A stretch of DNA of 64,000 nucleotides from Cyanophora paradoxa CCMP329 (lineage: Eukaryota > Plantae > Glaucophyta), in the NCBI GenBank assembly GCA_004431415.1, contig QPMI01000101.1:1-64000 (forward strand), given 5' to 3'. Shown one piece after another: positions 2,991-51,843 of this stretch (position 1 is the first letter of the stretch; each line of letters starts with the position of its first letter). The notes under the pieces are model-generated. The model was not told the DNA's origin. It searched no databases and was given only the letters and a program-made list of their open reading frames with translations. A program made the position numbers and the translations under genes.

Positions 2991-5224
2991 GCGGGCGCGG
3001 CCGCCGCCGTGCGGCGCCGCCTCGCCGGCCTGTCGGACCCGTCGCCCCTCGCCGCCTACGCGCGGCCCGGGCTCTCCGCGAGGCCCTCGCCCCGCCGGCC
3101 CCGGCTTCGGCCCGCCCGCCGGCGCCGGCGGCGGGCGGGCGGCGGTGGCGGCGGCGGTGTGGGCCGGCCTGCTGCGGGCGCTGCGGGGCGGGGCGGGGGC
3201 CGGGGAGGGGGCGGGGCGGCGGGAGGCCGGGGTGGGGAACGCGGCGGGGGTGCTCGCGGCGCTCCTCAAGGAGGGCCGCCGCCTCGGCCCCCGGGGGAGC
3301 CCCCCGCGGCCCAGGAGCCGCCCGAGGCCTCCCCCTCGCCCCCGGCCCCCAAGCGGCCCCGCCGCCTCCTCGAGGGCGGCGAGGACGGCTGCCGCGAGTC
3401 CGCCCCCTCCGTCCCCGGCCCCGCCCCCGCCGAGGACTTTGACGGGGCGCTGCGGACGGCCTTCAGCGCCGCGGCCGGCGACGTGCCGCTCCTCCTTCAC
3501 GCCCTCCAGCCCGCCGCCGGACTCGTGCGCCCCGCCCCTTCCCCCCGCGTGACCCTCCGACTCCAAGAGGAAGGAATGCGAAGTAAAGATAGATCGCGCC
3601 CTGCGCTCGAGCCGCCTCGGTCGCGTGGTCCCGAGGAGGCTCCTCGCAGGGCCCCGTGGCGAGGCACGGGCTCCTGCAGCTGCTGCGCGGCCTCGCCAAG
3701 TGCGAGGCGGCGGCCCCCGCCCTCGCCGCCCCGCTCCCCGGCCCGGCCCGCCCCGCCCGCGCCCTCCTCGCCGGCCTCCCCCAGGTCCCCGCAGCGCATC
3801 CGATCCGCCGCTCTCACTTCGCGGCCCCCGACCTTGGAGCGCAGCTGCTCTCGTGCCTGGCGGCGGCGGCAGGCGGGGGCGGCGGGGGCGAGTCGGGGGA
3901 GGAGCGGGCGGCGCTCGTGCCGAGCCGCCTGCGCGTGCGCCCCGTCCTCCCTCCCCGCTCCCCGCCATCGACCGACGCGACCCGCCCCGCCGCAGGCCCT
4001 CCAGACCCTCCTCCTCCTCGTCCCCGGCCCCGCCCCCGCCGCGCGCTCGGCGCCGGCGGCCGCCCCGGCGCCGGACGAGGCGGCGGCCGAGCGGCTGCTG
4101 GAGGCGCTGGCGCCGTGGGCGAAGGAAGCGGGGCGGGGGCCGGGGGCGGGGGCGAGGAGGACGGGGAGGGGTCGGCGTTCGTGCCGGAGGCGGGGCGGCC
4201 CGGGGCGGCCGAGGGGCCCCTCCGCCGCCTCGGCGCGCGCCTGCTCCTCCGCCTCGCCGCCGCCCGCCCCGCCTCGCGGCGCGCGCCCTCGGGGCGGCCC
4301 TGGGCGGGGGCGGGGCGGCGGGCGCGGCCGCCTGGGGCGCTTCCTGGCGCTCTGCGAGGCGCACGACGAGGCGCTCGTCGACGGCCTCTTCTGCCTCCTG
4401 CGCGCCTGGCCCGCCGCCCCGCGCCTCTGCCCGCACCCCCGCGACGCCCTCGCCGCCCTCGCCGCCGGCCCCGGGGACGCGCAGGCGGGCCGCCCCCCCC
4501 CCCCCCCCTGCCCCCCCCCTGCCCCCCCCCCCCCCCCCCCCCCCCCCTGCCTCTCGCTGACGAGCGGGCAGCTGCTGCTGGACTTCTTGATCTCGGGGAG
4601 ACCGCCTTCCTCCCCTACTTCCTCGAGGCCCTCGCCCACCTCGCCGCCCCGCCGCCCCCTCCCGCCCGCCCCAGCGCCCGCAGCCGCCGCCGCCTCCACG
4701 GCCCGGCGCCCGGGGCCGGGGCCGGGGCCGGGGCCGGGGCGGGAGATGCGGGGCAGGGGTCGGGCCTGGCGGCCCTCGCGGCGGCATACGGACCCGAGAG
4801 CTCGAGCGAGGGCGAGGGCGAGGGTGAGGGCGAGGGCGAGGAGGAGGAGGAGGAGGAGGAGGGGATGAGGCGCGCCGGCCTCGCCGCCTGCCTCTCCGAG
4901 CTGAGGGAGACGGTGCGGGGGGACGGGCAGCGGGGCAGCTCGCGGCTGCGCTCGCTGACGCGGCGCTCGCAGGTGGCGCGGCTGGCGGGGAAGCGGCTCT
5001 TCCCGTACCGCCCGGGGCCCCTCCTGCGGCGCCTCGGGGAGGCCCTCGCCGCCCTGCGCGATGACGGGGAGTGGGGTCCCGAGGGGGAGGGCGCCGCCCC
5101 CGCCCCCGCCAAGGGCGAAGCTTCTGAAGCCGACGTCGAATGCAGCCCAGCGTCTACGTCAGGCTGTGAGACCCCTCCGAGGCCCCTCCCCCAGAATCGC
5201 CCTTCAGGAGAAGAAGGCCCTTAG
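2991..5224 (+). CDS. Lines/LINS1-like region, apparently continuous with the PRMT gene
   Basis: FLALCEAHDEALVDGLFCLL, LLLDFLISGETAFLPYFLEAL and CLSELRET|VARLAGKRLFPYRPGPLLRRL match the Lines motifs LDFLISxETxFLxY and LFPYNxxxLLxxL. TAG at 5222-5224. Several frame slips fall in GC runs. Confidence 0.7.
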
Positions 5225-34699: not shown

Positions 34700-37189
34700 A
34701 TGGGTTCCGGGGAAGTCGCGCCTTCTGCGCCGCTGGGCCTGTCGATCTCCGTGCCGCCGCCAACCCCTCTCGGAACCAGCAGCGGGAATGCAGCATCGGG
34801 CGGCCTGACTCCGATTTCGGGGTCGAACGGAGGTCCGTGGCGGCGGGTCGGGGCGGGGCGCGCTGGCCTGATTTTCTCGAGCTCGCAGGCCTGAGTCCCA
34901 GTGTCCGATCTGCCAACAACGTGAACAAAGACCACACGCACATCGTGAATACGGCTAAGCGAGCGGTGTCAATGGGAGAGAAAACGTACGGGGCGTCGAG
35001 CCCGCGCGTGCTGACCCAGCTCATGAACGTGAGCCTGCCCCTCGCCTGCGCGCCGGCCGCCCCGCCTGACCGGCCGCCCCCCCGCAGCTCGCCACTCTAC
35101 ACGCGTTCGCCCGCCCGCCCGTCCTGCTAGCTGCCGCCGCGCCCGACGGGGCGGCGCTCGCTTGCAGGGCGCAAGGGAAGGTCGGGGAGGCAATGGAGAC
35201 TTACCAGCAGATTCTCGCGGCGCGCGTCGCGGCGCACGGGGAGACGCACGAGGACGTGGCCGAGACGCTCGCCTCGATGGCCTCTGCCCTGCACCGCGCC
35301 GGCCGCGCCGGCGAGGCGGCTGAGCACTTCGCCCGCGCCTGCGCCGTGCGCGAGCGGCTCGTCGGCGGCGAGAGCCTCGAGCTGGCCGGCTGGCTCGCCA
35401 AGCTGGGCGTGCTGTACCGAGCGGCGGGGGACCTGGAGCGCGCGTGGGAGGCGCAGGCGCGCGCCCTCGCCATCCGCGAGGCGCAGCAGCTGCCGGACGC
35501 GCACCCGGACGTGGCGGCCTCGCTCTCGCAGCTGGCGGACCTCGCGCAGGCGACCGAGGGCCGCTCGCACGAGGCGGCGCGGCTGCTGCGGCGCGTGCTG
35601 GCGGCGCGGGAGGCGGAGCTGGGGGAGGAGGACGAGGAGACGCTGCTCGCGATGAACAACCTCGCGCTCTGCCTCAAGGGCGCCGGCCAGTTCGACGAGG
35701 CCCTGGCGCTCTACGGGCGGGCGCTGGCCGTCGAGGAGCGCACGCTCGGGCCCCGCCACCCGGACCTCGCCCCGCTCCTCTGCAACACCGCCGCCCTCCA
35801 CACCGCCCGCGGCGAGCCGGCCGCCGCCGTCCCCCTCCTCCGCCGCGCCGCCGAGCTCTGGGAGGAGGCGCGCACCCCTCCCCCTCGCTTCTATCCCCAA
35901 CCTCTCCTGACCCCCGGGCAGGCGGGGGACGTTGCGAACCAGGCGGGGGGGCTACACAACCTAGCGCGGGCCCTTCGCGTGCGGCCGGACCCGGCCCGTC
36001 CCTCCCAGGGGTACGGCGCACGATGCGGCCGCGCAGGGCGGGGGTGACTTCGCGGGCGCTGAGGAGCAGTTCGGAAGGGCGCTGGCGCTGAAGCGTGAGG
36101 CGTTCGGCAGGCGCGGCGCCCCTGCCCGCGTTGCCCCCCCCCCCCCCCCCCCCGCCCCGGTTGCGATGGGGTACCGCGCAGGCGGCACGCGACGGTGGCG
36201 ACGACGCTCAACTCGCTCGGCGTCCTCGAGAAGTCCCGCGGGCACCTCGACCAGGCCGCCGCCCTCCTCAAGGCCCGTACCCCTCCCTCCCCCCCCTCCC
36301 CCGGCGCTGAACTGATTTGTGGGCACAGGAGGCGCTGGAGATCCGGGAGGCGGCGCTGGGGCGGAGCAGCCCCGAGTTCGCCGAGTCGCTGAACAACCTG
36401 TGCGCGCGCCGCGTGCCCCCCGCGCCACCGCGGCCGACGCGTGCCCCCCCTCCAGCGCGGCGTGCGAGCAGGCGCTGGGGAGGCACGCGGAGGCGCTCGC
36501 GCTCTACAGGGAGGCCCTCGCCCTGCGCGCCGCCGTGCGCCGGCCCCGCCCCGCCCCGCCGGCGCTGCTCCTCTCAGCGGGGCGGGGGCAGGCGTGCGGG
36601 GAGGACTCGCTCGAGGCGGCGACGGTGCTGAACAACTGCGGGGCCTGCTGCCGGGCCCTCGGGCGCCTCGAGGAGGCCTCCGAGGCCTATGAGCGCGCCC
36701 TCGCTGCCTGCGAAGGCCGCCCCGGCGAACCCGGCGCCCCGCCCTTCGCCGCCGTCCTCCTCTCCAACCTCTCCGAGCTGTCCGCCCCCCCGCCCCCCCG
36801 AGCCCCGCCGGCTCGCCGTTGCCGGCTGCGAGTTGACGGCCGGCGCGGGCGGCGCAGGTACGCGCGCATGGGCGACGCGGCGAGGGCGCGCGAGGCGGCC
36901 GAAGAGGCGCTGGCGCACCTGCGGCAGCTCCTCCCCGCGGGACCGCGGAGGCCGCGGGCCCGAGGAAGGGCGGGGCGGGGGCGGGCAGCAGGCAGCGGGG
37001 CGGCGGGGGGGGCGGGCGGGGGCCGCCGGCGGTGGACCTTGGGGCCCTCTACCGGCACCTCTCCCGCTCCCTCGCCGCCCTCCCCTCCGGCTCCGGCTCC
37101 GGCTCTGGCTCGAGGTAGCGGGCCGGGCCCTCCGCCCCGCCCCGCCCCGCCGCTCCCCGCCCCGCCGCGCAAGTGCAGCATCACCATAG
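34700..37189 (+). CDS. TPR-repeat protein (kinesin-light-chain/NPHP3-like TPR_12); 3' end uncertain
   Basis: Repeats of about 42 aa such as HPDVAASLSQLA, TLLAMNNLA..GQFDEALALYGRALAVEERTLGPRHPDLA, AESLNNL and ATVLNNCG. Confidence 0.85.
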
Positions 37190-37612
37190 ATCGAGTCCCT
37201 TCTCGGCCGGTCGCCCACCGGCATCGCATACTCGCATAATCCGCTTCCTTTGCAGCTTAGTCGTCGAATTTCGCAGCTCGTTCGATGTACAGGCCCTTTT
37301 CATAGAGGTGTTGAATCTAATAGCCCCTAAAATGTGACGGCGCGCAGCAAGCCTGTGCCCAGGTGCGGATCTAGAGAGCTGTGGCCTGCTGGAGCTCGTC
37401 GGACCGGAGTCCACATCGCAGGCGAGGCCCGGGGCAGGGGGTACGTAAACGTCACAATTCAGGGTTGCCGGCGCCCGGCGTCTGGTGCACGTGCACCGGG
37501 TATCAAGCCACGTTTCAAACGCGACCCTGAAGCGGCTGCATTGGCTTTGTGCACAGCTTCGGGCCCCGACCACACCAGCTCGCGGACGTACGCGGACGAG
37601 CGAAGCCGCCGG

Positions 37613-39545
37613 ATGGGGTCGCAGGCAGGGAAGGGTGCGGGCGCCGGTGTCGAGCCGGCGCACGCCCTCGCGTTCAGCCGGAGCCTGCAGGCGCTCGCAG
37701 GCAAGCTGTACGAGCACCTTAACGCGAGCGTGCGTGCGAGCCTTCGCCCTTCTGCACAGCCCTAGGCCTTCGAACGTGCGTGAACTTTGCGCAGAATGGG
37801 GCGGGGAACCTGGTCTTCTCGCCGCTGAGCGTCTCGGTGTGCCTGGCGCTGGCGCTCGAGGGCGCGCTCGGCGAGACGCGCCGCGAGATGCTCGCGGCGC
37901 TCGAGGTCCCCGAGGACGACGCCGCGCGCCGCAGCGCCGCCGCAGCCGCCGTCCGTGCGCCACAGCTGCAGCCATCGGCTGCAGACGTGAATCGGCAGCT
38001 CATGCTCAGCCCCGGGCGGCAGATGCGGTGACGGGCGCCGGCTCCGGTGCGCTCCTGGCGAGCGGGGCTTTCGCGGACAAGACGATGACGCTGCTGCCGG
38101 CCTACGCGAAGGCCATCGGCCAGTACGCCGCCGCTGTCCGCCAGGTTCGAAGCTTGGGCCAAGAAACCCTCGGCTTTGCGCTCTCGGACCAGTCCGACGC
38201 ACGCGGGGCCGCCGGGCGGTAGGTCGATTTCGCGGGGGCGCCGGGTGCGTCGCTCGCCGCTATAAACGGATTCGTCGCCGACGCGACCGGCAATCTCATC
38301 CGCGAGATTCTCAGCCAGGCCTGCCCGTCCCCTCAGCTCCAGTACCCCCCGGCCCCCCGCCCCCCTGACGCCTCCCCCGCTCCCCCGCAGGTCGGGCCCG
38401 ACACGCGCCTCGTGCTCGTCAACGCTCTGTACTTCAAGGTGGCGTCGTACCCCCGGCGCCGCTCTGACGGTCCCCTCTCGGTAACCCCCGACTCGTTAGG
38501 ACGCCTGGGTACACCCCTTCCCGAAGTCGCGGACGGCGCCGCTGCCCTTCCACACCGCCCCCGGCTCCTCGCGCGACGTCCCCACCATGCGTGTCTCCGC
38601 GTGTGCATGTACCCCCTCCTTCACAATCCCTGCAACCCCTTCTGAGCCCAGTGCTCCCAGGAGCTTCAAGTACGCCCACCTCGCCGACGCGGGCGCCGAG
38701 CTCCTCGAGCTGCCCTTCAAGTCCGCCCTGTACCCCCCTCGGACAAAGATGTCCCCCCATCGACGCGCGCGCACCGCGACCGGCAGGGGAGGGGCGTCGA
38801 TGCTGCTGCTGCTGCCGGGCGAGGGGGGCACGCTCGAGGGCGCACTGGCGTGGCTCGCCAAGGAGGGCCCCTGGCCGGCCCGCCTCTGCACCCTCGCCGA
38901 CACCGCCGCCCCCCAGCAGATCACCGTCCGTCGCCCCTCTTGCCCTTCTCACCCCCTTCCGAACCCCGGTGCCCCTGCGGCCCCGTGGCAGCTCTTCCTC
39001 CCCAAGTTCGTCGCGGAGATGCGGGCCGCCCTTCCAGAGGCTCTGAAGGCGCGAACTCCCCCCCCCCGGGCTCCCGAGTCGTCCGTTTTGTGCAGCTGAG
39101 TGCCTCTGCACGCACCAGGCGATGGGGATGCGGCGGGCGTTCGGGGAGGGGGCGGACTTTGGGGGGATGGCCCCCGAACGTGCGCGTACCCCCGCCCTCC
39201 AGCTGTACCAGCGGAAGCGAGCGGCGGGGGCAGCGCTGTTCGTGTCGGAGGTGGCGCACGCGGCGCGGTACGAGGTGGGGGAGGAGGGCGTGGAGGCGGC
39301 GGCTGCCACGGCCGTCGTCATGTCCCGCTGCGCCCTCGTCATCCCCCGCGACAAGCAGGCGCCCCCGCCCCGCCCCGCCCCCGCCCCCGCCCTCGGCTCG
39401 CCTCGAAGCGGGGCCTCGCCAGCGAGGGCCTGACCGAGCCGCGCAGGTGCACGCCGACCGGCCCTTCGCCTATGCGCTGCGGCACGCGCCAAGCCGCTCC
39501 CTGCTCTTCCTCGGCGCCCTCCGCGACCCCTCCCCGGCCAAGTAG
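37613..39545 (+). CDS. Serpin, probably intracellular and inhibitory
   Basis: NLVFSPLSVSVCLAL, INGFVADATGNLI, TRLVLVNALYFK, LLELPF, SMLLLLP, LFLPKF, hinge EEGVEAAAATAV and ADRPFAYAL..LLFLG. No signal peptide. Confidence 0.93.
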
Positions 39546-40018
39546 CTGGGAAATTAAATCGATCGCGGTTCGCGACCGGCGGGACCGGTGCCGGTTCGGT
39601 GCTAGCGCGTATATGCGTAGTGGCTCTGAACTACAAACTGAACACCAAAACAAATGAGCCGCTGCACGTAGATGAGGAGTGGAGGTGCAATCGCAAGATC
39701 TAGATCATTATCGTGACCTAGTTATTCACCTAAGATAATTCGACTGGAAAACGGAAACCAGACTCTCAAGGGAAGCTGCATATATATAATATACCCTTAA
39801 GCTTGTCCGGCGGTCCTCGATCGTCGCAAGGGATGCATTGTTCAAGATAGAACCAAACTGCGCGTGCGTACAGCTAAAAGAGTATAGACTGATATCGATT
39901 ACAAAAAGTGAGTCGCGATCATCGGATCGTGAGCCCGGAAGACATATGCATGAGCTAAAATTAATTTGCTAACACTGCAACGTTAACCGCTGGGCGTGTA
40001 CGCGGCTAGTGCTCAAGG

Positions 40019-43000
40019 TCACTTCTTCGAATTCTCGCCCTCGTCGCTGCTAGAGCCGTCCTTCTTGCCCTTGCCCTTCTTGTCGGCGCCCTTGCCGCCC
40101 TTGCCGCCCTTGCGCTTGGCGCCGTGCTTCCCTTCCTCCTCCTTGTCGTCCGACTCGTTGGCGATGGGCGCCATCCACCCGACCTGCGCTCGCGCGGCTC
40201 GCGCGCAGCCCGAGCCCGGGCCCGAGCTCGGGGAGGGGCACCTCGGAGAGGATGGCGGCCTCGGCCTGGAGGACGAGCTTGTCGACGTTGGCGCGCTTCA
40301 GCTTGTCGCCGCGGCCCAGCGCCGCCCACCAGACCAGCAGGTTGTTCAGCTCCGTGATCGCCATGTTCATCCGCATCCTGCGCCCCGCGCCGCTCGGCTC
40401 AGGGGGACAGGCCGGGGCTGCGACACACGAAGAGCGCGGCGCACAGCCTCATCTCAAGCCTGCGCAAAGAATCGAAGAAGTGAGATGATGAATGAATTCG
40501 AGTATATATTTAACTAAGAGCGAAAATTGGAGGTTCGAATTCAGCCAAATGATACACACTTTTCAAGCTCCTGGAAGGCCGTGAGGACCGACACGGCGCT
40601 GCGCAACGGCGGGCGCTGTCAGAGGGCTTTATACAGGATGCATGTATTCCGATTCGAATTCGGATTCGGGATCGGCGACGCGGCACCCGGTGGTGAGGGC
40701 GATCCAGATGCGAAAGTTGAGCGCGCCAAGCACCGCCCCGAGCCTGCGCGCGCCGCGCGTGAGGCCGGCTCAGGCGCGCGCGGCGGCTTCGGGATCGGAG
40801 TTCAAAGCCGCGCGCACCCGCCAACCAAATAGCTGACGATCTGTAGGAACTTGAGCCAGAGGCTGCGCGCGCCCCTCGGTCAACACTCGTCACACCTCGA
40901 AACGCGGCCCTCCAGACAACGAAAAACGGGCACCTGAGCTCCTTGCTTTCCTTGCGGAAGCGGCGGATCTTCGGCTGCACGCGCAGCTTGATGTACTGGT
41001 CGGGCTCCAGTTGCGCGAACCCGTTGTCCTCCGGCTGCGCTCGAGCCGTTCCCAGTCAATTCGTTACGGCTCGCTATCCAGACCGGTCGAGGGAGGGCCG
41101 GGGGAGGGGGTGAGGTGGGGGAAGAGGGGGGGGGGGGAGGGGGGGGGGAGAAGGGGAGAGGGGTGGGTGGGTGGGGGGCTGGCGCACGTGAATCCACTCC
41201 ATGGCGCGGACGTCGCTGAAGCCGGCCTTCTCCTTCGACGCCTCCGGCTCGCCCTCCTCCTGCGCCCGCCCGCGCACATCGATCCGACGTCGACGTCCGC
41301 CCGGATCCGCCGCGCGATTCAATGTTCGTGCAAATTGAATGCAGCGATATTCGGAGGATCGCATATGCAAATAGTCTGCCTAAAATTAGGAGGAAGGCTT
41401 CGAGGGGCAGACCGAGGCGAGCATCTGGAGGCGCGCGAGGCCGCGGTCGTCCGTCTCGGGGAACTGCGCCGAATCCGGCCCCCGGAGAGCATTGATACCG
41501 CATTCGAACAGGAAGGGCGCCGGGCGGGGGGGGGGAGGGGGGCCACGGCGGAGGGCGCGCACGATGATGAAGGGCTGCTTGTTGCGCTTGTCGACCCGCA
41601 CGATCTTCTTCCTGCGCGCCCCGCTCAACAACGCCTCTCGCTGAGATCTCAAACGGCAGGCTCTAGCTTTCTCGAGTCGAGTCGACGCACGCGGTGGAGT
41701 CGAGGGAAGACGAGTTGATCTCCCCCTGCATGAGCCGCGTGCTGATGCCCTTGACTGCAGCCGAAGTTTCAGAGCAGAGAGAGATGCATAGAGGCACTAG
41801 ATCGCTTAAAACAGCGCTGGCTGCGCGGGGGACCTTTCTCGGCGAGCTTGAGCGGCCCGTTCTTGTCCCGGTAGTCGAGGCCGGCCTTAGTGCGGAACTT
41901 CATCAGCTCCGCCTTGATGAACTCGGCGGAGACCGTCAGCCCCGCGAACTTAGCTGCACGTTGCGTCCAGCTAGCGTCAGCGTCTTCGAAGAGCGCGGTT
42001 TAATTTTGGTCGGGGCGCACAGGTGGCGCTGAGGCGGCTGCTGATGCTCAGCAGCGCTGTCAGCACGATGGGCCACAGCACGGAAAGCGTGCTCAGGAAC
42101 ACGTCGATTTTGTACTGCGCGCCGGCCCGCACCGCGTCACATGTCGGGCGCCGTCGGACGTTGACCGAAACTGGACGCGTGCGGACCTGCCGCCAGTCCG
42201 ATCCGTTGATGCAGTAGCCCAAGACGCCGGGGACCGCGGGGGTGGCCCCCGTACAGTTCGAGGTCTGCGAGTTCGCCATTGGTCACGCTTTGTATGATCG
42301 AGGCCACACAAATATATTTTAAAACAAGAAGAGCGAGGGACCTGGAAGAAAGCGTCGAGCACGACCTGAACAACACATGTACACAGGAAGAAACTCCTCG
42401 AGTTAGCGTAGATTTTAAGGAGCTTGAAATGCTTGAAATGCATGAGGGCGCAACGGACCGTAACAATGGAGAGAAGCCCGAAAAGTTGAATGAAGAACTG
42501 CACGCAAGTACGTAGTACGTATACGGGCGCGCTCAACGTACGAAAGCGCAGAAGCCAAACGCGTTTGAGCAAGGAATAGGCGCACGTTCAGAGCTCGCCC
42601 GATGAGCCGCTGCTTTTCGCCGCTACGGTGCCACAGCGCGTACCGAATCCAGCAGTCTGCTCACGGTCGGATCCGAAGGCGATATCGAGCAAATCAAATT
42701 GATCGCAAGACGGCTCCAGATTCATGATCTTTATATCTAGAATTATTAGAAGGCCGAACGTGGCCGCACCCGTGAGGATTATGCGCGTGTCATCTGCGTT
42801 TTGCACGGGGCTGCGCCGCGCGGCATCAGCAAGCTTAAGCGGCATCACGTGGGAATCGGGAGTGGGGGTGGGGCGTTACTTGAGGAAGCGTCGGGTGTTG
42901 ACGACGACGTCCTCGACCTTGTCCTTGTCGAGGTCGATGAAGGTCAGCTCGCCGTCCTCGACGACCTCCGCCATCACCGGCTCGTTCTGCGGAGGAGCAT

Positions 43001-44800
43001 TGACATTAATGTGGTCCTCAGGGAGGAACGTCAGCGACAGCCGAATCGATGCAAGCGTCGCACGTCGAGGGACTCGGGGTCCTCTTTCCACTTCAGGAAC
43101 TTCTTTGCAAGCTCATCCGCCAGGCCTGCGCGTCGAAGGCCAAAGTAAATTGAAGGCGCGACGGTGCCGGTCGGACGATGTCGATGTCCTGATCATGAAT
43201 TCAATAAAAGACTCGCCTCCGGTGCCTTCAATAATGAGGAGAGGGATCTGCCTCGTAATTATAATTTATAGGGCGTGAGGCTGGACCGGAAATGCGAAGC
43301 GGAAAGTGCGGTGGGACCGCTCGAGACGAAGCGATCGCACCTTCTTTCGGGCGCAGAGGACGAGCTCTTCGAGGTGGTGCGGGCGCCCGCCGATGAGCAG
43401 GACGCACGTCGGGATCTCAGCGTCGCCCCCGGCATCGTCCCCCGCCGCGCTCTCGTCGTCGGCGTCCACTGCGCCGCCGACTCCCATCTCCGCGCCCTTC
43501 TCGCCGTACGCGTTGGTGGCGGGGGCCTGCAGCGCCGCGGCGATGCGGGCGCCCTGTCCTGCCGTCTTGCGCGACACCATCCTCCAGAGCCGGCTCCAGA
43601 AGCTGACAACCGCTGCTTGCACGTGCACGTGCATGCACGTAAGCAGATTGAAGCGAATGCAAAGCAGCCAAGACGGATGGTCAGGGGCTCTCGCGCACGG
43701 GCGGAGCTGCGCTTTTTCTTGGTGGTGGGCGCGCTGTTCCGCTCGAACTCGGCGAGGAGGTCGACGCCGAGCGACTGCAGGTGCGCCTGCATCGCCTCGT
43801 GGAGGCCCTCGACCATTGCCATCTTCGCCTGCTTCTGCTCGCGCCGCGCGTCAGCAGGCCAGGAACGACCGCAAATTAAAGCATATTCCACAATCGATAT
43901 CTAGATATTGATATCACAACTCCGACGTGGAATGCTCAATGCATATGGGACCGTCGGAGGAAGCGGCGCACGCTGCGCTCGTCTTCGAGGGTGTCGCTCT
44001 TGATCCAGACGCCGACGGTCGTGTTCGGCTCCAGGGGTTCCGGCGCGTTCGGCGGCAGCTCGTCCTCCTCGTCGATCACCTTCGGGAACGTGATTCCCGG
44101 CGCCCTGTAGTCGACGCTAAAATTCAGCAAAGCAAATCGACATCAAAGCTCAACGAGGACGGGTCGCACAGCAGGCTCTGTCTGTCGACCCACGTGTCCT
44201 TCCGAGATTCATTCCATGCGTTGAATCCGAACTGCGAGCGATCGCAATTCGCGAGGGACACGGCGGGTTTAGGAAGGGAGGTCGCGTACCAAGAAAGCCC
44301 TGTTTGCAGCAGCAACAACATATCAAAGCAATTCTGTCAGAAGAAACCACGCGGCAAATGGCCACATGGGTCTGTCAATATGATGCTTCGGCGGACCTGC
44401 GCTTTGCCTTCGATTCGCGGTCCTTGTACTCTTGCTGAGGATCCGAAGACAGAGAAAGATGGCACGTTCAGCCAACGAGTGGAGGAAGATAACAGGATCG
44501 GTGGCGATGGCGGGCGCATCGCACCGACTGGACGCAGCTGCCGAGGACGGACCCGACGAAGGTCGATGTGTTCTGGTGCACCACCACGGCCGCCTTCTCG
44601 GCCTGCATGCGGTCTGACGCTTAGAACGGACGCTTGGAGGGGCGGGCCGGCGCGGGCGCGCACGGCGACGCGCATGACGCCGCGCGAGACGAGCTGCTTC
44701 ACCTTCCGCTTCCGCTCCTCCAGCGCCCCCTGACGCTTCTTCTCCTTCTCCTTCTCCGCAGCCGCCGCCGCATCGCCCCCGTCAACTGCGAGGCGCCAGG
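40019..44800 (-). CDS. SLOG (LSDAT-type) domain followed by two SLATT/DUF4231 2-TM domains
   Basis: SLOG part: LVSRGVMRVAV..AVVVHQNT, PLEPNTT..DE, CVLLIGG..EELV..|IPLLIIEGTG|GLADELA, EPVMAEVVEDG. SLATT-1: FFIQLFGLLSIV, LWPIVLTALLSISSRL, SAEFIKAELMKFRTKAG. SLATT-2: DDRGLARL|..PDQYIKLRV, LGALNFRIWIALTTG, NMAITELNNLLVWWAAL..KLVLQAEAAILSE. Ends GENSKK*. Confidence 0.75.
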
Positions 44801-47800
44801 AAGTCATTGCGAAGCAACCCAACCGCCGGATTCGATCGTAATTATGTAAACGCGGGCGGAATTCTTACGGTCGCCGTTGGCTTCGGCCTGGACGCCGGAC
44901 CCGGCGCCGTTCGCCTCGCCTTCGCCGGAGGGGGAGGCGCGGAAGGACTTGCGCGGGGCGCGCATCGACCTGTTTCCCGCGCTGTCCTCCGCGGCCGCGT
45001 GCACCGGCGCCGCGCGCTTCAGGCCTAGGGGCTTCCCCTCGTATTCCGCCTTCAGGATTGGGTAGTCCTCGAGCTGACCGCGAGGAGAGCTCAGCGCGAC
45101 AGCGTCGGTGCAGCATCGACGGAGTCTCGAACGGGAAAGACGCGAGGATAACTCAGCGCGAGGATCATTGCTAGTCGATCGCGAGGATATCACAGCGCGA
45201 TATCGATATCATTGTCTGAAGGTCGATTTTGATGATTGCTTAATCTTAATCCTAAAAAGCGATAGTGAATGCACGACGCACAACGACTATGACGCTGCGG
45301 CGGAGTGCAAAGGGCTTTCCCTGCTGCAGTGCGTCGCGGTTGACCTGCCCCGCGCGCGCGATTAAATCAGTCTGACGGTCACCATTGAAAGAAATTTCAC
45401 AAACTCCCTACTAGGCTATACGACTTCGAACTCGAACATATTCAATTCGAAGCTTAAAGAAATTAGGCGTCTGGTAAAGATCTAGAGCGAGGCCGGTTGC
45501 GCGCGTCCGACGGTCATGATTGCCTCGAGCTCTGACCTGCTTCTCGACTGCGTCGCGGGCCACGTCCGACGCGTGGTCGCACGTCGTCTGCGCGAACACA
45601 GATCAATTCTCATTCTCCAAAAACTTAAAGATCAATCAGAGCAAGCGCGAAGCCAGATCTAGAAGCTTGAGAAGCATCATATATGCGTGGCATGAATCAA
45701 GAAATTAAAACGGATTGAAGAGTTTAAGCAGTGCACGTGTGTATAGCGAAGTAACCCAATGAAAAGTCGCTCACAATGTAGAAGTAACCCTGGTTTTGTG
45801 TGGATGGGAAGTATAGCTGTGGAAGGAAAGGATCTGGATTAGGGGAGAGATTCGGGAGTTCGCTCGGCGCCGGCGCGCGCGCGCGTGCGCGCCTCGAGGT
45901 CGCCGGTGTGTGCGCCGAACTCGGACTGCGGGCTCGCCCCGAACTCGTTCACCGCCACGACCGTGTAGCGGTACGTCTCTGCCCTCCGGCGTGAGCCAAC
46001 TCGCGCGTATCGGAGATCGAGAGCCACGCGATGCCATGATGATGCCTCGCTCGAGCTCGCGCGCGTCCGCGCACCTCCAGGAAGGACGGACGACACGGTC
46101 AAGTCCTCGAGCTCCGTCTGTCCATGGCCAAGGGCCCCGGCGTCGCGCGCGCTGCAGGCCGGCATTCGGAGCGGGGCGCGCACCGGAAGCACGGGGCGCG
46201 GCTCGTTCGCGTTGATGTCGAGGGGGAAGGGGAGGACGTAGTTCCGCCCCGACGCCTCCTTCTTCGCGCTGATCTTGTACCGCCCGTCCTGCGAGTTTCG
46301 AAATGAAGCGGCGCGCAAACGGAAGAATGACAGGCAAATGCAGTGATCATGACGTGCCTGCGCGATTTCCCTCACGTACAGCGTCCGAATGCCTGTGCCG
46401 GCGTCGCCGCCGTCCGCTTGAGAGAGGGATGCAGGGGCGGCCACCCCCCCACCGAGCGGGGGCAAGCCGAGGTTGGACTTGACGGCGGCAGCGCTCGATC
46501 CAGCCGGACCGGGGAGGGAGGCCGCCGACTTCGCTGCCTCCGCCGGCGGGTGCAGATACAGTGTGATGGAGTAACTGTACCCGGATGAATAATATGTGAG
46601 AAGCTTAAGCGTGCGCGTGCGGGTCGCCGCGCACCCGATGAATGAGGATGGATCGTCCGGAGACGACTCTAGCGAAATCTCGCCAATCTGCTCATTCATC
46701 AGTTCGACCTTCGACCTCTAGCTCATATGGGCGATTCGATTCGATTTATGTAATTAGCGCGCCTTGACCATGTCGGTGATGGACGCCTGGTCGCGGCTGC
46801 GAAGGACGATGTACTTGGAGATGGTGGAGCCGCCCGTGGACCGCGGCTCCTCCCAGTCCTGAGCGAGAGAGAGCGCGAGATCGAGGTCAGCTTTCGCTTG
46901 CTGTCGGCTCGCTCTGTTCGCAGGGGCGAGCCGCATGCGCAGCTGCACATGCCGCCGGCGCTCATCATGATCACCCGTGCACGTGGCGGCCCTCGCAGGC
47001 GGCAGCGCCTAGGGGCCTTGGAAAAAGCAGATTGGATTTTGCAACTTCGAGGCCGGGCGCGAACCACGTGAACGTAGACGTTCGAGGGCTGGAAGTCGCC
47101 GAAGTCGCCCCCGCGCGCGAGGTTCGCGTTGGGCGTGACGGGCGTGCCTGCGCATTCATGAGCCCCCCGGCCGGCCGCGGTAGCTGCCGGTCAGCTACGC
47201 TTGCACGTAGACCAAGCACGGAGATTAATGAAATTGAAGGTGGGAAAAAGCGCACAGTTGCACGAGGGCGGGGCGGTGGGCGGCCCGCTCCCAGTCCAGA
47301 ATGTTTGCGTCGGGCTGATCATTGCCATGAATTAGAATTAAAAAGATGGCGTTTAGCATATTGCGAGTCGATGATCATGATTCTTTAAAGCAATGAACTG
47401 AAAGCTGTGCAACAGATTTTGAATTCGACGATGAAATACGCACCTGTATTCAACTAGGCCCTTGCCGCTCTCGGCTGCAGATTAAAATCTTGGTCAGCAC
47501 ACAGCATGGGAACCCGCAGATTTGTTTGGACGCGGGAAGGAAAATCAAATGCTACCCCTGAGTCTGATAAGGAACTGCGATTGTAAAACTTCAGTTGACG
47601 ATTTCGATCATCGAATATCTGGAAAGATAACAGAGAAGAGTGCTTGCCTGCTTCCCCGGGGGCAGGCCGTACATCGTGTGGCGCGTCCCGTGCCCGACCG
47701 GCACCTCCCGCCACTTCTCCCCTGCAAGTTGGTCCGCTCGCGCGGCGTCGGATCGCAGCGGAGCGCCGGGACGCACCGCCGTCGATATCTTGCCACTCGA

Positions 47801-49620
47801 GAGCGTACTCCGTGTCGGGCCCGTGCCGAAAGTGCCTGCGAGTACGGGCCATTCAGAAGGAGATCCCGCCCACTGATCGTGATTCACAAAGCGATCCGGG
47901 GGATCCGAGTGAAGTTAAATAATAAAGCTCGCAGAGAAAATCGAATCCTTCAAGGTGCGATCTTTTGAGCTATTCTCCAAGGCTCTTAATGCGGAAGCTC
48001 TGATGGAGCTTGGAACGTTGACGCCAGAACGCAAGCATCGCACGGACCGCTCCCAGGTGACGGAGGCGGTGGAGGCGACGACGGAGACGGAGGGCGGCGT
48101 CAGGGAGGCCTTCACGAAGAACTCGGAGTGCGTCACGTCCTCCACCCGCCCCGACGCGTACACGCCCTGCAGCCGGAACTTCACCAGCCGCCCCGCCTGC
48201 GAGCGCAGCAGATCGATGTCCAGATCAGTTTGGTTTCAAGTTCGAGCCGGCCGCGGTGAGGGTCCGGGCGGCCGCGCCTGGAGGCCCTGGACGCGCCGGG
48301 TGAAGTGCTGCGCCGCGCCGGCCTCCTTCCGCCGCGTGTCGAAGTCCTCCGCCGTCGCTGCCCGTGCCGCCATCGCGAGTCACTTCGCGTCACAGGAATG
48401 GCTGGGGTAGGATATGTGTAGGGCAGAGGAAGGGGTGGTGGGTGGGTGGTTGCAATTGGGGCAAGGGAGGGGGGCGATCGCGAGGGGGGCGGGGGCGGGG
48501 GGGGGGGGAGGGGAGGGGAGGGGAGGATATATATGCAGTGCAAGGGCCATCGCGCCAAGCGGGGCAAAGTTAAAATTGATAGGACCTGGGGGAGGGAGAG
48601 GGGGCCGCGGGGAGCTCAATCGCGAAGGAGAATACGTAATCAGGGTGGCCGAAAAACATAAGGGGCGCTCAGGGAGGCCATGGCATGCGCATTGAAAGGG
48701 GATAAATTTTAAAGGGCGGCTGGGTGGTCAAGAGCCGACGGGGAGCTCGCCTGGCGTCCAGGGGACCCGGGGGTCGCCCGAGCCGTTGTGGAGCAGGACG
48801 AAGCACCTGTTGCGGTGCGCGTATGGTTGCAGCGCCTCAGACGAGAGCGGGAGCTCGAGGGGCGGTCTACAAGAGGAGGGGGGGAGCTGGCGGGGCCGGG
48901 GGGGGCGGGGCCCGGGGCGCACCGCAGCTCGTCGGCGTCCTCGGGGGGCGCCGGCTCGCCCCGCCCCAGGCGGGCGCGCAGGCGCGCCAGCTGCAGCCCG
49001 CCCTCGTGCTTCCACGTCACAAGCACCTGCGCGGGGGCCCACCGAGTCAGCGCGCTGCAGCGCTAGCGCTAGCGGGCACTCTTTAATTTGCATTACGAGC
49101 GCTCGGGCAGCTGCGCATGCAGAGCAAAACGCGCCATGTGCCCGGAGGATGTGTCGATCTCCTTGAAGGATAGCTGGGGGCGTGCCTTGGGCTGCGCCTG
49201 CCGGCGCCATGGCCAGCAAAGCCCAACGGTTAGCTGTGCCGCTCGGGCGGGGAGCTCAAGGCGCGCGCGTGCAGCGGCAGTTGGCGTCGGCCGCGGCGTG
49301 CGAGCGTGCACCTGTTGCGACACGCTTTCCCTGCGCGAGCCGGAAACCAGCACGGGGGCGGGGCCCTGCGCGCCGCCGCCCGCCACGCCATCGATATCGG
49401 AAAGCATGCCCGCTGCAGCTGCTGTTGGCGCCGCCGGCGGCGCCAGCGCCTCCGCGCCGGCAATTGCGACTACGGCTGGAGCCGAGTGCGCGGCCGCGGC
49501 GAAGGTTTGCTGCTGCGCGGTCACATCGTGGGCGAGCTCGTTGACGTGTTCCGCGAGAGTCCTCGCCGTCGGGTCGCCTATCGGCGGGAGATGCACGGCG
49601 CGGCCGCTCGCCATCGCCAT
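44801..49620 (-). CDS. Fibronectin type III repeat region, probably the 5' half of the same gene as the SLOG-SLATT region
   Basis: VLVTWKH, RRVQGLQ|AGRLVKFRLQGV, ASVTWE..YALEWQ..HTMYGLPPG, WEEPRSTGGSTISKYIV and TYRYTVVAVNEFGAS are FN3 consensus pieces. Start MAMASGRAV at 49620, with no signal peptide. Confidence 0.65.
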
Positions 49621-50262
49621 CCCTAGGCCGCCCGACTCCTGCTGAGGGCGCGGCTGCCACTGCCGCATCGCGAGCCCCGGCCCGCGGCCGAAGTAAATCG
49701 TGACTCTTGCTCGGAGTTGCTCTAGCTATACCTAGCCCTAGGCCTGACGCGCGCACGTGCTCGCGGCGCCGGCGCCGGCGCCGGCGCGGCGAATTCGAAG
49801 GCTGCGAAGCCCGCGAAGCTGATCACAATTCTATCGGCCGATGAGTCCAGCCCCGCGAATGCCTGCGCATGCCGCGCGCAATGCCGCCTTAAGCTTCAAA
49901 CTTCGCGCGCGCGAAGCGCAGGCCCGAGGACCGACGGCGCCCGACGCTCCTCATGATCAGCGGCGCAGGCCGCTGAGGCTGCCGCAGAAGGCCCGCAGAC
50001 TGGGCCGCAGTACGCTACTGTACGCATGTTGCGCATGCGCTGCCTCTCGCCGCGGCGCGCGCGGGCCGCCGCGGCGCAGCCAGGCGGCCCAGGCCCGGGC
50101 CGCCCGGCCCGCAAAGGCCCGGCGCCCCCGCATGCGCAGTGCGCACTGCGCAGGGCGCTCCGCAAGAGACTGCCAAGAGTCCGCATGTGCTCTCCGTGCA
50201 GTACCGGGGGCCTTTTTTTTCTGTCCGGTACCGAGTATATATACCGTAGTACATGTGCCAGC

Positions 50263-50950: not shown

Positions 50951-51121
50951 GTGCCAGCTCGAGGCCAGCCCCAGTCAGCCGTTACTAACCGACAATGCCA
51001 GCGACTGTGGGGCCCGCCGAGTTCTTGCAAGTTGCGAAGATTTGGACCCCCAACTTGGCAAAGAACTCGTAGCGCTAGCCTACCGTGTAATACTTAATTA
51101 CCGCGCTGACGTAACTACTGC

Positions 51122-51290
51122 GGTTTGACGGACGAAAGTTGGACGAAAGTTGAGGTTTGACGGACGAAAGTTGGACGAAAGTTGAGGTTTGACGGACGAA
51201 AGTTGGACGAAAGTTGAGGTTTGACGGACGAAAGTTGGACGAAAGTTGAGGTTTGACGGACGAAAGTTGGACGAAAGTTGAGGTTTGACG
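51122..51290. repeat. Tandem array: five perfect 32-bp units plus 9 bp
   Basis: Unit GGTTTGAC-GGACGAAAGTT-GGACGAAAGTT-GA starts at 51122, 51154, 51186, 51218 and 51250. Confidence 0.95.
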
Positions 51291-51843
51291 CGCGCGCGCG
51301 CGATGAGTTTTAAGCTTGATCATGAGCGGCGCTCGCGGTCGCGATCGAGCGCCGACGTCGCGCGCGCAGGGTCCTGCGCGCCCCTTCGCCGGGGTTTCGC
51401 ATGGATCTACACGCGCCCCGCTCTGGCAGGCCACCCAACCCCTCTGCAGCTGTGCGCTCTTCAGCGAGCAGCACTCACATTGGGCACCAGTGCGCTCCGG
51501 ATCCCTTTCGTTTAAAAATTTGATTTGATTTAATTTCGCGCGCACGGCGTCGCGCAGGCGATCCGCACGGATTGCGATGGCCCCAGCACCCCAGCTTCGA
51601 TCCGACGCGGCGCGATGCGGCTCCACCTTACGCACCTTCGGGAGCGGGGGAGGCCCCCCGGTACCAGTCTCCCGGTCCGGGGCCCGTGGGGGTTCCGGAT
51701 CCGGCCCCCTCGGGCAGCATTCCTCCTCCTTAGCGGCCAGTCCGTGGCGGGAACGGGCAAGCCTCCGGGCACGGCCCGCACCTCTGATATCGATCTTCTG
51801 ATCTTAAGCCCGTAGGGTAAGTAGACCTAGGTTTCGATCTCGA

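Follow-up and report, generated by a model that had tools for sequence, protein, structure and literature searches.

We analysed a 64,000-nucleotide stretch (the window) of contig QPMI01000101.1 from the glaucophyte Cyanophora paradoxa CCMP329. An initial annotation of this DNA had claimed a spliced minus-strand gene encoding, in this order, FN3 repeats, a SLOG/LSDAT domain and two SLATT units. Such a gene is present: a stop-free model of 50 exons and a public protein model both bear out the claimed order. The encoded protein has the order FN3(s)-SLOG-SLATT-SLATT, is related to a bacterial protein family, adopts a SLOG fold, carries four transmembrane (TM) segments and has lost several motifs of the SLOG pocket.

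Gene model and FN3 region

The model, which we built by hand on the minus strand (49668-40019), joins its exons into 1458 codons with zero internal stops and a GC content at third codon positions (GC3) of 0.89. All 49 introns read G(T/C)..AG, with 41 GT and 8 GC donors and lengths of 53-393 nt. An in-frame ATG lies at 49620 and a second one 16 codons upstream at 49668; the stop codon ends at 40019. In leave-one-out splice scoring most sites lay above the 90th percentile of intronic decoys, with weak donors at exons 9 and 32 and a weak acceptor at exon 27. The motifs quoted in the initial annotation were recovered in the order given there: LEPN in exon 27 (near 44037), LIGG in exon 29, IEGTG and GLADELA on either side of the exon 30/31 boundary, and PVMAEVVEDG in exon 32. 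The GC-donor introns (8 of 49) sit nearly all in the FN3 half of the gene, and the model contains micro-exons of 10, 15, 19 and 24 nt.

An independent annotation of the gene exists in EukProt, as model tig00000403_g268 of Cyanophora paradoxa (1096 aa, in the following P0001). In pairwise comparison it agrees with the hand-built model from residue 329 to the end and departs from it by a later start, three shifted splice sites and the skipping of exons 19-20. In it, too, SLOG and the two SLATT units follow the last FN3 domain within one protein. When exon 29 alone was searched against 1.8 billion representatives, P0001 was the single real match. Profile, homology and fold searches used single exons or P0001 as query, the latter without exons 1-10 and 19-20, while the joined 1458-aa translation served for frame, hydropathy, coordinates and the comparison with P0001.

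At the FN3-SLOG junction, the donor of exon 18 and the acceptors of exons 19, 20 and 21 are strong, and these sites are all in phase 0. Exons 19-22 each begin at a strong acceptor and not at a start codon, and the longest intron of the junction measures 305 nt. FN3-like domain 2 runs into exon 11, which is present in P0001, and exons 1-10 are therefore most likely part of one gene with the rest. We consider it virtually certain that the SLOG-SLATT-SLATT core is real. Judged by the splice-site scores and the public model, its fusion to FN3 is very probably real as well. A pseudogene was rejected given the open frame and the conserved SLATT residues, and bacterial contamination given the 49 introns and the eukaryotic neighbour genes.

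The claim of FN3 repeats stands in part: FN3 is present with about three domains, of which only the last has profile support. Within FN3-like domain 2 a conserved Trp, a Tyr and an L.P...F...A pattern can be read from the sequence. Single-exon profile searches gave no match for FN3-like domains 1 and 2, single exons being too short for profile matches. On P0001 the Pfam fn3 profile reached 17.2 bits, and 22.6 bits (E 1.3e-4) when restricted to residues 1-260, both below the cut-off of 25. P0001 residues 55-92 and 205-250 match neighbouring halves of single FN3 domains in FNDC3A and titin (PDB). Exons 11-18 therefore represent one FN3 domain with a large insert, and four or more FN3 repeats were rejected since two apparent repeats are the halves of this one domain. 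Folding the FN3 region as a single sequence without alignment gave a predicted local distance difference test score (pLDDT) of 35, too low to use. Introns 14-17 (60, 69, 66 and 96 nt) are multiples of three and stop-free, such that a 286-codon open frame (45839-46699, minus strand) spans the FN3 insert. Their retention would preserve the frame, which may be due to chance in GC-rich DNA.

No hydrophobic segment is found ahead of residue 1070, for which reason FN3 and SLOG would both be cytosolic. Together with the absence of a signal peptide this agrees with the cytosolic FN3 modules proposed initially.

Table 1. Positions of the gene and its parts within the window, with the evidence for each.
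Feature	Position	Strand	Evidence
Whole gene model, 50 exons, 1458 aa; alternative start 49620	40019..49668	minus	Open frame, splice sites, codon scores, public model
Exon 1, Ala/Pro-rich low-complexity N-terminus, no signal peptide, no Pfam match	49312..49668	minus	Coding scores
FN3-like domain 1, exons 2-6, residues ~124-252	48101..49185	minus	Motif reading only
FN3-like domain 2, exons 6-11, residues ~253-338, spans P0001 start	47293..48100	minus	Motif reading
FN3 domain 3, exons 11-18, split by ~110-130-aa insert (exons 13-16)	45896..47277	minus	Pfam fn3, FNDC3A/titin matches
FN3-SLOG linker, exons 19-20, skipped in P0001; may contribute strand 1 of SLOG	45282..45587	minus	Strong phase-0 splice sites, coding scores
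SLOG/LSDAT N-terminal half, exons 22-27; pocket motifs replaced, inserts present	43975..44705	minus	33.9 bits against bacterial family region, best shuffle 3.3
SLOG/LSDAT C-terminal half, exons 29-32	42891..43421	minus	Pfam LSDAT_prok; fold match to TRPM2 MHR1/2 and ThsA SLOG
First SLATT unit, DUF4231/SLATT_3-like; TM1 42591-42348, TM2 42102-42040	41702..42794	minus	Family-region score, hydropathy, AlphaFold2 helices
Second SLATT unit, SLATT_1; TM3 40849-40713, TM4 40709-40565	40172..41034	minus	Pfam and NCBIfam
Charged Lys/Gly-rich C-terminal tail and stop codon	40019..40171	minus	Gene model

Kinship with a bacterial family and origin of the gene

A tblastn search with P0001 residues 570-1050 returned two plasmid genes annotated as DUF4231, both of which encode LSDAT_prok, DUF4231 and SLATT_1. 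The Hymenobacter homologue is 27% identical to P0001 over 464 aa (E 2e-45), and at least 458 related clusters with identical families exist for this type of protein. A profile of the bacterial family matches exons 22, 23, 27, 29-32, 38-40, 44-46 and 49, with positions along the profile that rise steadily. This colinear match establishes that the core is kin to the LSDAT+SLATT+SLATT fusion of prokaryotes, as had been proposed at the outset. The family was reportedly defined by Burroughs et al. in 2015, in a paper that is said to describe prokaryotic LSDAT-SLATT fusions.

The bacterial LSDAT_prok-DUF4231-SLATT_1 proteins (PF18171 + PF14015/PF18184 + PF18181; Hymenobacter WP_243803067, Chlorohelix WP_341472297) share with the algal protein the domain order, four TM segments, the invariant SLATT residues and 21-31% core identity. 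We count the latter as a member of this family, since an LSDAT-type SLOG, a first SLATT, a C-terminal SLATT_1 and four TM segments were all found. In contrast to its bacterial relatives, it is eukaryotic, encoded by 50 exons and 1458 rather than ~550-770 aa long, and carries FN3 at the N-terminus. Further differences are the large SLOG inserts, the replaced pocket motifs, and a Cys pair and N-glycosylation sequons that lie between TM1 and TM2. Two bacterial members (P0099 and P0100) carry a C-terminal IPT/TIG Ig-like domain and thus provide a loose precedent for the addition of an Ig-like fold.

A scan of GTDB yielded 73 loci with 21-29% identity in Acidobacteriota, Bacteroidota, Pseudomonadota and other phyla. 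There was no cyanobacterium among them, though the scan was biased, as its motif was derived from the clades it returned. In a metagenome scan the best 80 loci were all 25-30% identical, none being closer than bacteria. Viral contigs and phages were searched and contained no homologues. Two word-based searches with P0001 regions, of low sensitivity and restricted by a length window, found only P0001 itself, and a search of the ESM Atlas with the whole protein gave no usable match.

In a quick maximum-likelihood tree, for which no cyanobacteria were sampled, the algal protein sat on a branch of 4.1 substitutions/site outside every supported clade. This branch suggests that the gene is likely an old acquisition from a bacterial donor. 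Bacteria are supported as the likely source, as had been considered initially. The cyanobacterial (endosymbiotic) origin put forward alongside is not supported, given the long unplaced branch and the lack of a cyanobacterial match in the motif-biased GTDB scan.

In the ESM Atlas, haptophyte-rich clusters hold proteins 935-1079 aa long that combine SLATT_1 and DUF4231, some with LSDAT_prok as well. Their feature scores are 0.92-0.93, and a structural match extends over 415 residues. These are eukaryotic and possess the same core families as the alga, with no fn3 family listed. As they share the core, it appears not to be unique among eukaryotes, and we argue that it is not confined to Cyanophora, taking the haptophyte clusters as leads only. 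From searches of low sensitivity, only the FN3 addition looks lineage-specific. The earlier remark that no description of this architecture is known is in agreement with our literature search, outside of which the defining 2015 paper lay and in which neither eukaryotic LSDAT-SLATT-SLATT proteins nor an FN3 fusion came up as the subject of a paper.

The SLOG domain and the membrane unit

The initial annotation had staked its claim on significant SLOG and SLATT profile matches. Both were obtained on P0001: Pfam LSDAT_prok reached 30.0 bits (cut-off 25.4) and Pfam SLATT_1 41.1 bits (cut-off 26.3; 41-45 bits across searches), while LSDAT_euk remained below its cut-off. The fold was modelled with AlphaFold2 from P0001 residues 300-1060 and 96 bacterial rows. 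The resulting model (pLDDT 72, predicted template modelling score 0.69) consists of a six-stranded Rossmann-like SLOG core with disordered inserts, followed by long helices that form two SLATT units. Its top structural matches were TRPM N-termini (Z 10.1-10.6), TRPM2 MHR1/2 (Z 10.1) and the SLOG domain of ThsA (BcThsA, Z 9.5). The isolated TRPM2 domain superimposed on the model with a root-mean-square deviation of 3.4 over 156 residues. The bacterial family profile itself aligns with human TRPM2 160-367 (E 1e-23).

The ADP-ribose (ADPR) site of TRPM2 is made up of Y295, the glycine loop, R302, R358 and a helix N-terminus (PMC6759353). The algal SLOG has retained the LEPN, GG and GTGGLAD elements. 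Replaced in P0001 are DGGT, GVAP, HxHF and WG.E, including the aromatic residue at the Y295 position, and these four motifs map onto the TRPM2 ADPR site. Each of them is kept in 54-77 of the 96 bacterial sequences. The SLOG pocket thus varies within the bacterial family as well, and the algal protein is therefore a variant and not a non-member. The strand-1 glycine loop would apparently be lost as well if exon 20 carries strand 1, a tentative placement. Because several pocket motifs are replaced, ADPR-type sensing by the algal SLOG appears doubtful, and the suggestion of nucleotide sensing as in TRPM2 or ThsA is not supported. Exon 29 (43341-43612, minus strand) contains, in the insert before SLOG strand 5, a GGA..D stretch like the strand-1 loop of the family, which is probably a chance occurrence in low-complexity sequence.

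The second SLATT unit also exceeded the cut-off of NCBIfam NF033634 (SLATT_1) with 49.1 bits. The first one did not match the Pfam DUF4231 profile, but scored 66 bits against the DUF4231 region of the bacterial homologues (best shuffle 5.8). The two SLATT/DUF4231-like 2-TM units seen initially are therewith confirmed, as are the four TM segments expected from them. Hydropathy detected four such segments with values of 1.96, 2.0, 1.65 and 1.36, compared to bacterial medians of 1.76, 2.03, 1.29 and 1.41. They coincide in place with the bacterial ones and with long helices of the AlphaFold2 model. A structural search with the SLATT part of the model returned only generic helical bundles. Family-conserved columns are retained at 35 of 51 and 22 of 48 positions in the two units, which is above the expectation for a decayed remnant and counts for the regulated channel or effector discussed below. 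Invariant SLATT residues outside the hydrophobic segments are likewise retained. The TM1-TM2 loop has gained two cysteines and two N-glycosylation sequons (exon 37, 42187-42264, minus strand), which are rare in the bacterial homologues (4/96 and 6/96, respectively). This fits a loop on the lumenal or outer side of the membrane and protein ends in the cytosol.

Possible function in relation to known systems

SLOG domains are linked to TRPM channels: the N-terminal sensor of the latter is regarded as derived from SLOG domains of bacteria, which became joined to a channel early in eukaryote evolution (PMC13143021). Like the algal protein, TRPM channels carry a homologous cytosolic SLOG clamshell (MHR1/2 = LSDAT_euk) ahead of a membrane unit. 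The alga in turn lacks the ankyrin-like MHR3/4, the 6-TM pore domain, the TRP helix and NUDT9-H, and the ADPR contacts of TRPM2 (Y295, glycine loop, R302, R358) are unmatched. Membership in the TRPM family was rejected, as Pfam gave no Ion_trans or TRPM match on P0001 and the structural match is limited to SLOG.

SLATT domains are predicted to form nucleotide-regulated pores (PMC9503650, PMC7159879). A SLATT effector is needed for DRT10 defence and another one is the effector of the type VII Thoeris system based on cyclic ADPR, in both cases with a predicted pore. The 2-TM SLATT unit is common to the alga, ThsH of type VII Thoeris and the DRT10 SLATT, and the SLOG fold is shared with ThsA. These three, however, are stand-alone operon parts that come with a signal-making enzyme, whereas in the alga the sensor and two SLATT units are fused. 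No signal synthase or partner gene lies near the algal gene, although such linkage is not expected in a eukaryote. Its neighbours are a convergent serpin gene (37780-39657, plus strand; Pfam Serpin matches at both ends) and, upstream of the latter, a gene for a TPR_12/TPR_10 repeat protein (35193-37240, plus strand). Upstream of the SLOG-SLATT gene, an intergenic tandem repeat (51087-51322) comprises about six near-identical copies with a 32-nt period. An immune role, as envisaged in the initial annotation, is not supported, there being no PADLOC model for the family and no partner gene nearby. A copy of a proven defence system is probably less likely than a regulated membrane channel.

Tentatively, and with slightly less than even confidence, we favour a regulated channel or effector with four TM segments and a remodelled sensor, derived from an old, domesticated bacterial acquisition. 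A single nuclear gene would have been acquired long ago from a bacterium and fully domesticated, as its 49 introns and host codon use suggest. Its product would be a membrane protein that spans the membrane four times and keeps both termini in the cytosol. Its tandem SLATT units may assemble into oligomers that form a regulated pore or channel, in line with proposals for other SLATT proteins. Gating would be the task of the SLOG clamshell, which the long helix ahead of TM1 would couple to the TM helices. Since the aromatic clamp and apparently also the glycine loop that hold ADPR in TRPM2 are replaced, the gate may respond to a different ligand or to protein contacts, with the FN3 domains and the inserts as docking sites. 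In stress or signalling, the protein could then resemble a small regulated channel of the TRPM style and would not necessarily act as a suicide effector. Several points weigh against such a channel. The AlphaFold2 model was steered by the bacterial alignment and represents a monomer only. Equally degenerate SLOG N-terminal halves occur in some Acidobacteriaceae and Burkholderiales members, and motif loss is therefore no proof of lost nucleotide binding. Finally, structure and literature searches found neither a SLATT_1/DUF4231 structure nor a measured channel activity, pores being only predicted even in bacteria.

It is rather unlikely, though it fares best among the alternatives, that the protein is a nucleotide-gated cell-death or antiviral effector, in which an NAD+-derived or cyclic nucleotide made on infection would bind SLOG and open a lethal SLATT pore. 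About 10 of 75 bacterial loci adjoin TPR-S/TRAF-binding/cyclase genes and 5 adjoin large genes, an nSTAND1 NTPase among these. The alga has kept the phosphate-binding glycine pair and the GxGGLAD loop, and a SLATT-domain gene of Gephyrocapsa huxleyi changes its expression in virus-infection experiments (2026 preprint, 10.64898/2026.09.30.755861). However, several motifs of the SLOG pocket are replaced, the LSDAT_prok-DUF4231-SLATT_1 family is not represented among the PADLOC models and most bacterial loci lie in ordinary housekeeping synteny. In addition, the algal gene is a single intron-rich locus without sign of mobility, and its neighbours are a serpin and a TPR gene.

Two recurrent arrangements were seen at the bacterial loci. 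A neighbour related to TPR-S/MAP3K TRAF-binding proteins recurs (L022, L027, L030, L033, L036, L067 (about 3500-4600), L009, L047, L061). It is divergently transcribed in Acidobacteriota loci with a degenerate SLOG N-terminal half, possibly forming a two-gene conflict system. At Hymenobacter-type loci (L001, L018, L029, L032, L048, L054, L063) the gene lies between glycosyl hydrolase 108 and peptidoglycan-binding genes, at some of them near an nSTAND1 NTPase.

A membrane-anchored scaffold, with SLATT helices that provide only an anchor and oligomerisation unit and with FN3 and a pseudo-SLOG that bind cytoskeletal or signalling partners, is in our view unlikely. FNDC3A, with cytosolic FN3 repeats on a TM anchor, offers a comparison, and the large low-complexity SLOG inserts, the degenerate pocket, the closeness of FN3 to titin and FNDC3A and the very long branch would fit. 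The invariant SLATT residues kept outside the hydrophobic segments, however, go beyond the needs of an anchor. Quite improbable is a merger, by gene prediction alone, of two adjacent genes for an FN3 protein and a SLOG-SLATT-SLATT protein: the two gene models do differ at the junction (exons 19-20) and at the start and no FN3-bearing homologue was found in low-sensitivity searches, but the matching phases and strong splice sites, start-free exons and short introns of the junction as well as the independent P0001 model join both parts.

The core of the favoured channel or effector is already known as a predicted bacterial family, which limits the surprise. What the gene adds is a eukaryote that has retained the bacterial SLOG-SLATT-SLATT arrangement whole and supplemented it with modules of its own. 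The algal protein offers a eukaryotic, membrane-targeted case for the predicted regulated SLATT pores and for the gating of a membrane unit by a SLOG clamshell. A bolder and, in our estimate, less probable possibility is a so far undescribed family of eukaryotic ion channels that would be present in glaucophytes and haptophytes and whose TRPM-type SLOG gating module would still be coupled to its bacterial tandem SLATT partner instead of a TRP pore. If true, bacterial conflict sensors would have given rise to eukaryotic channels independently by a second route, here rewired by FN3, and the family may be part of algal antiviral or stress signalling.

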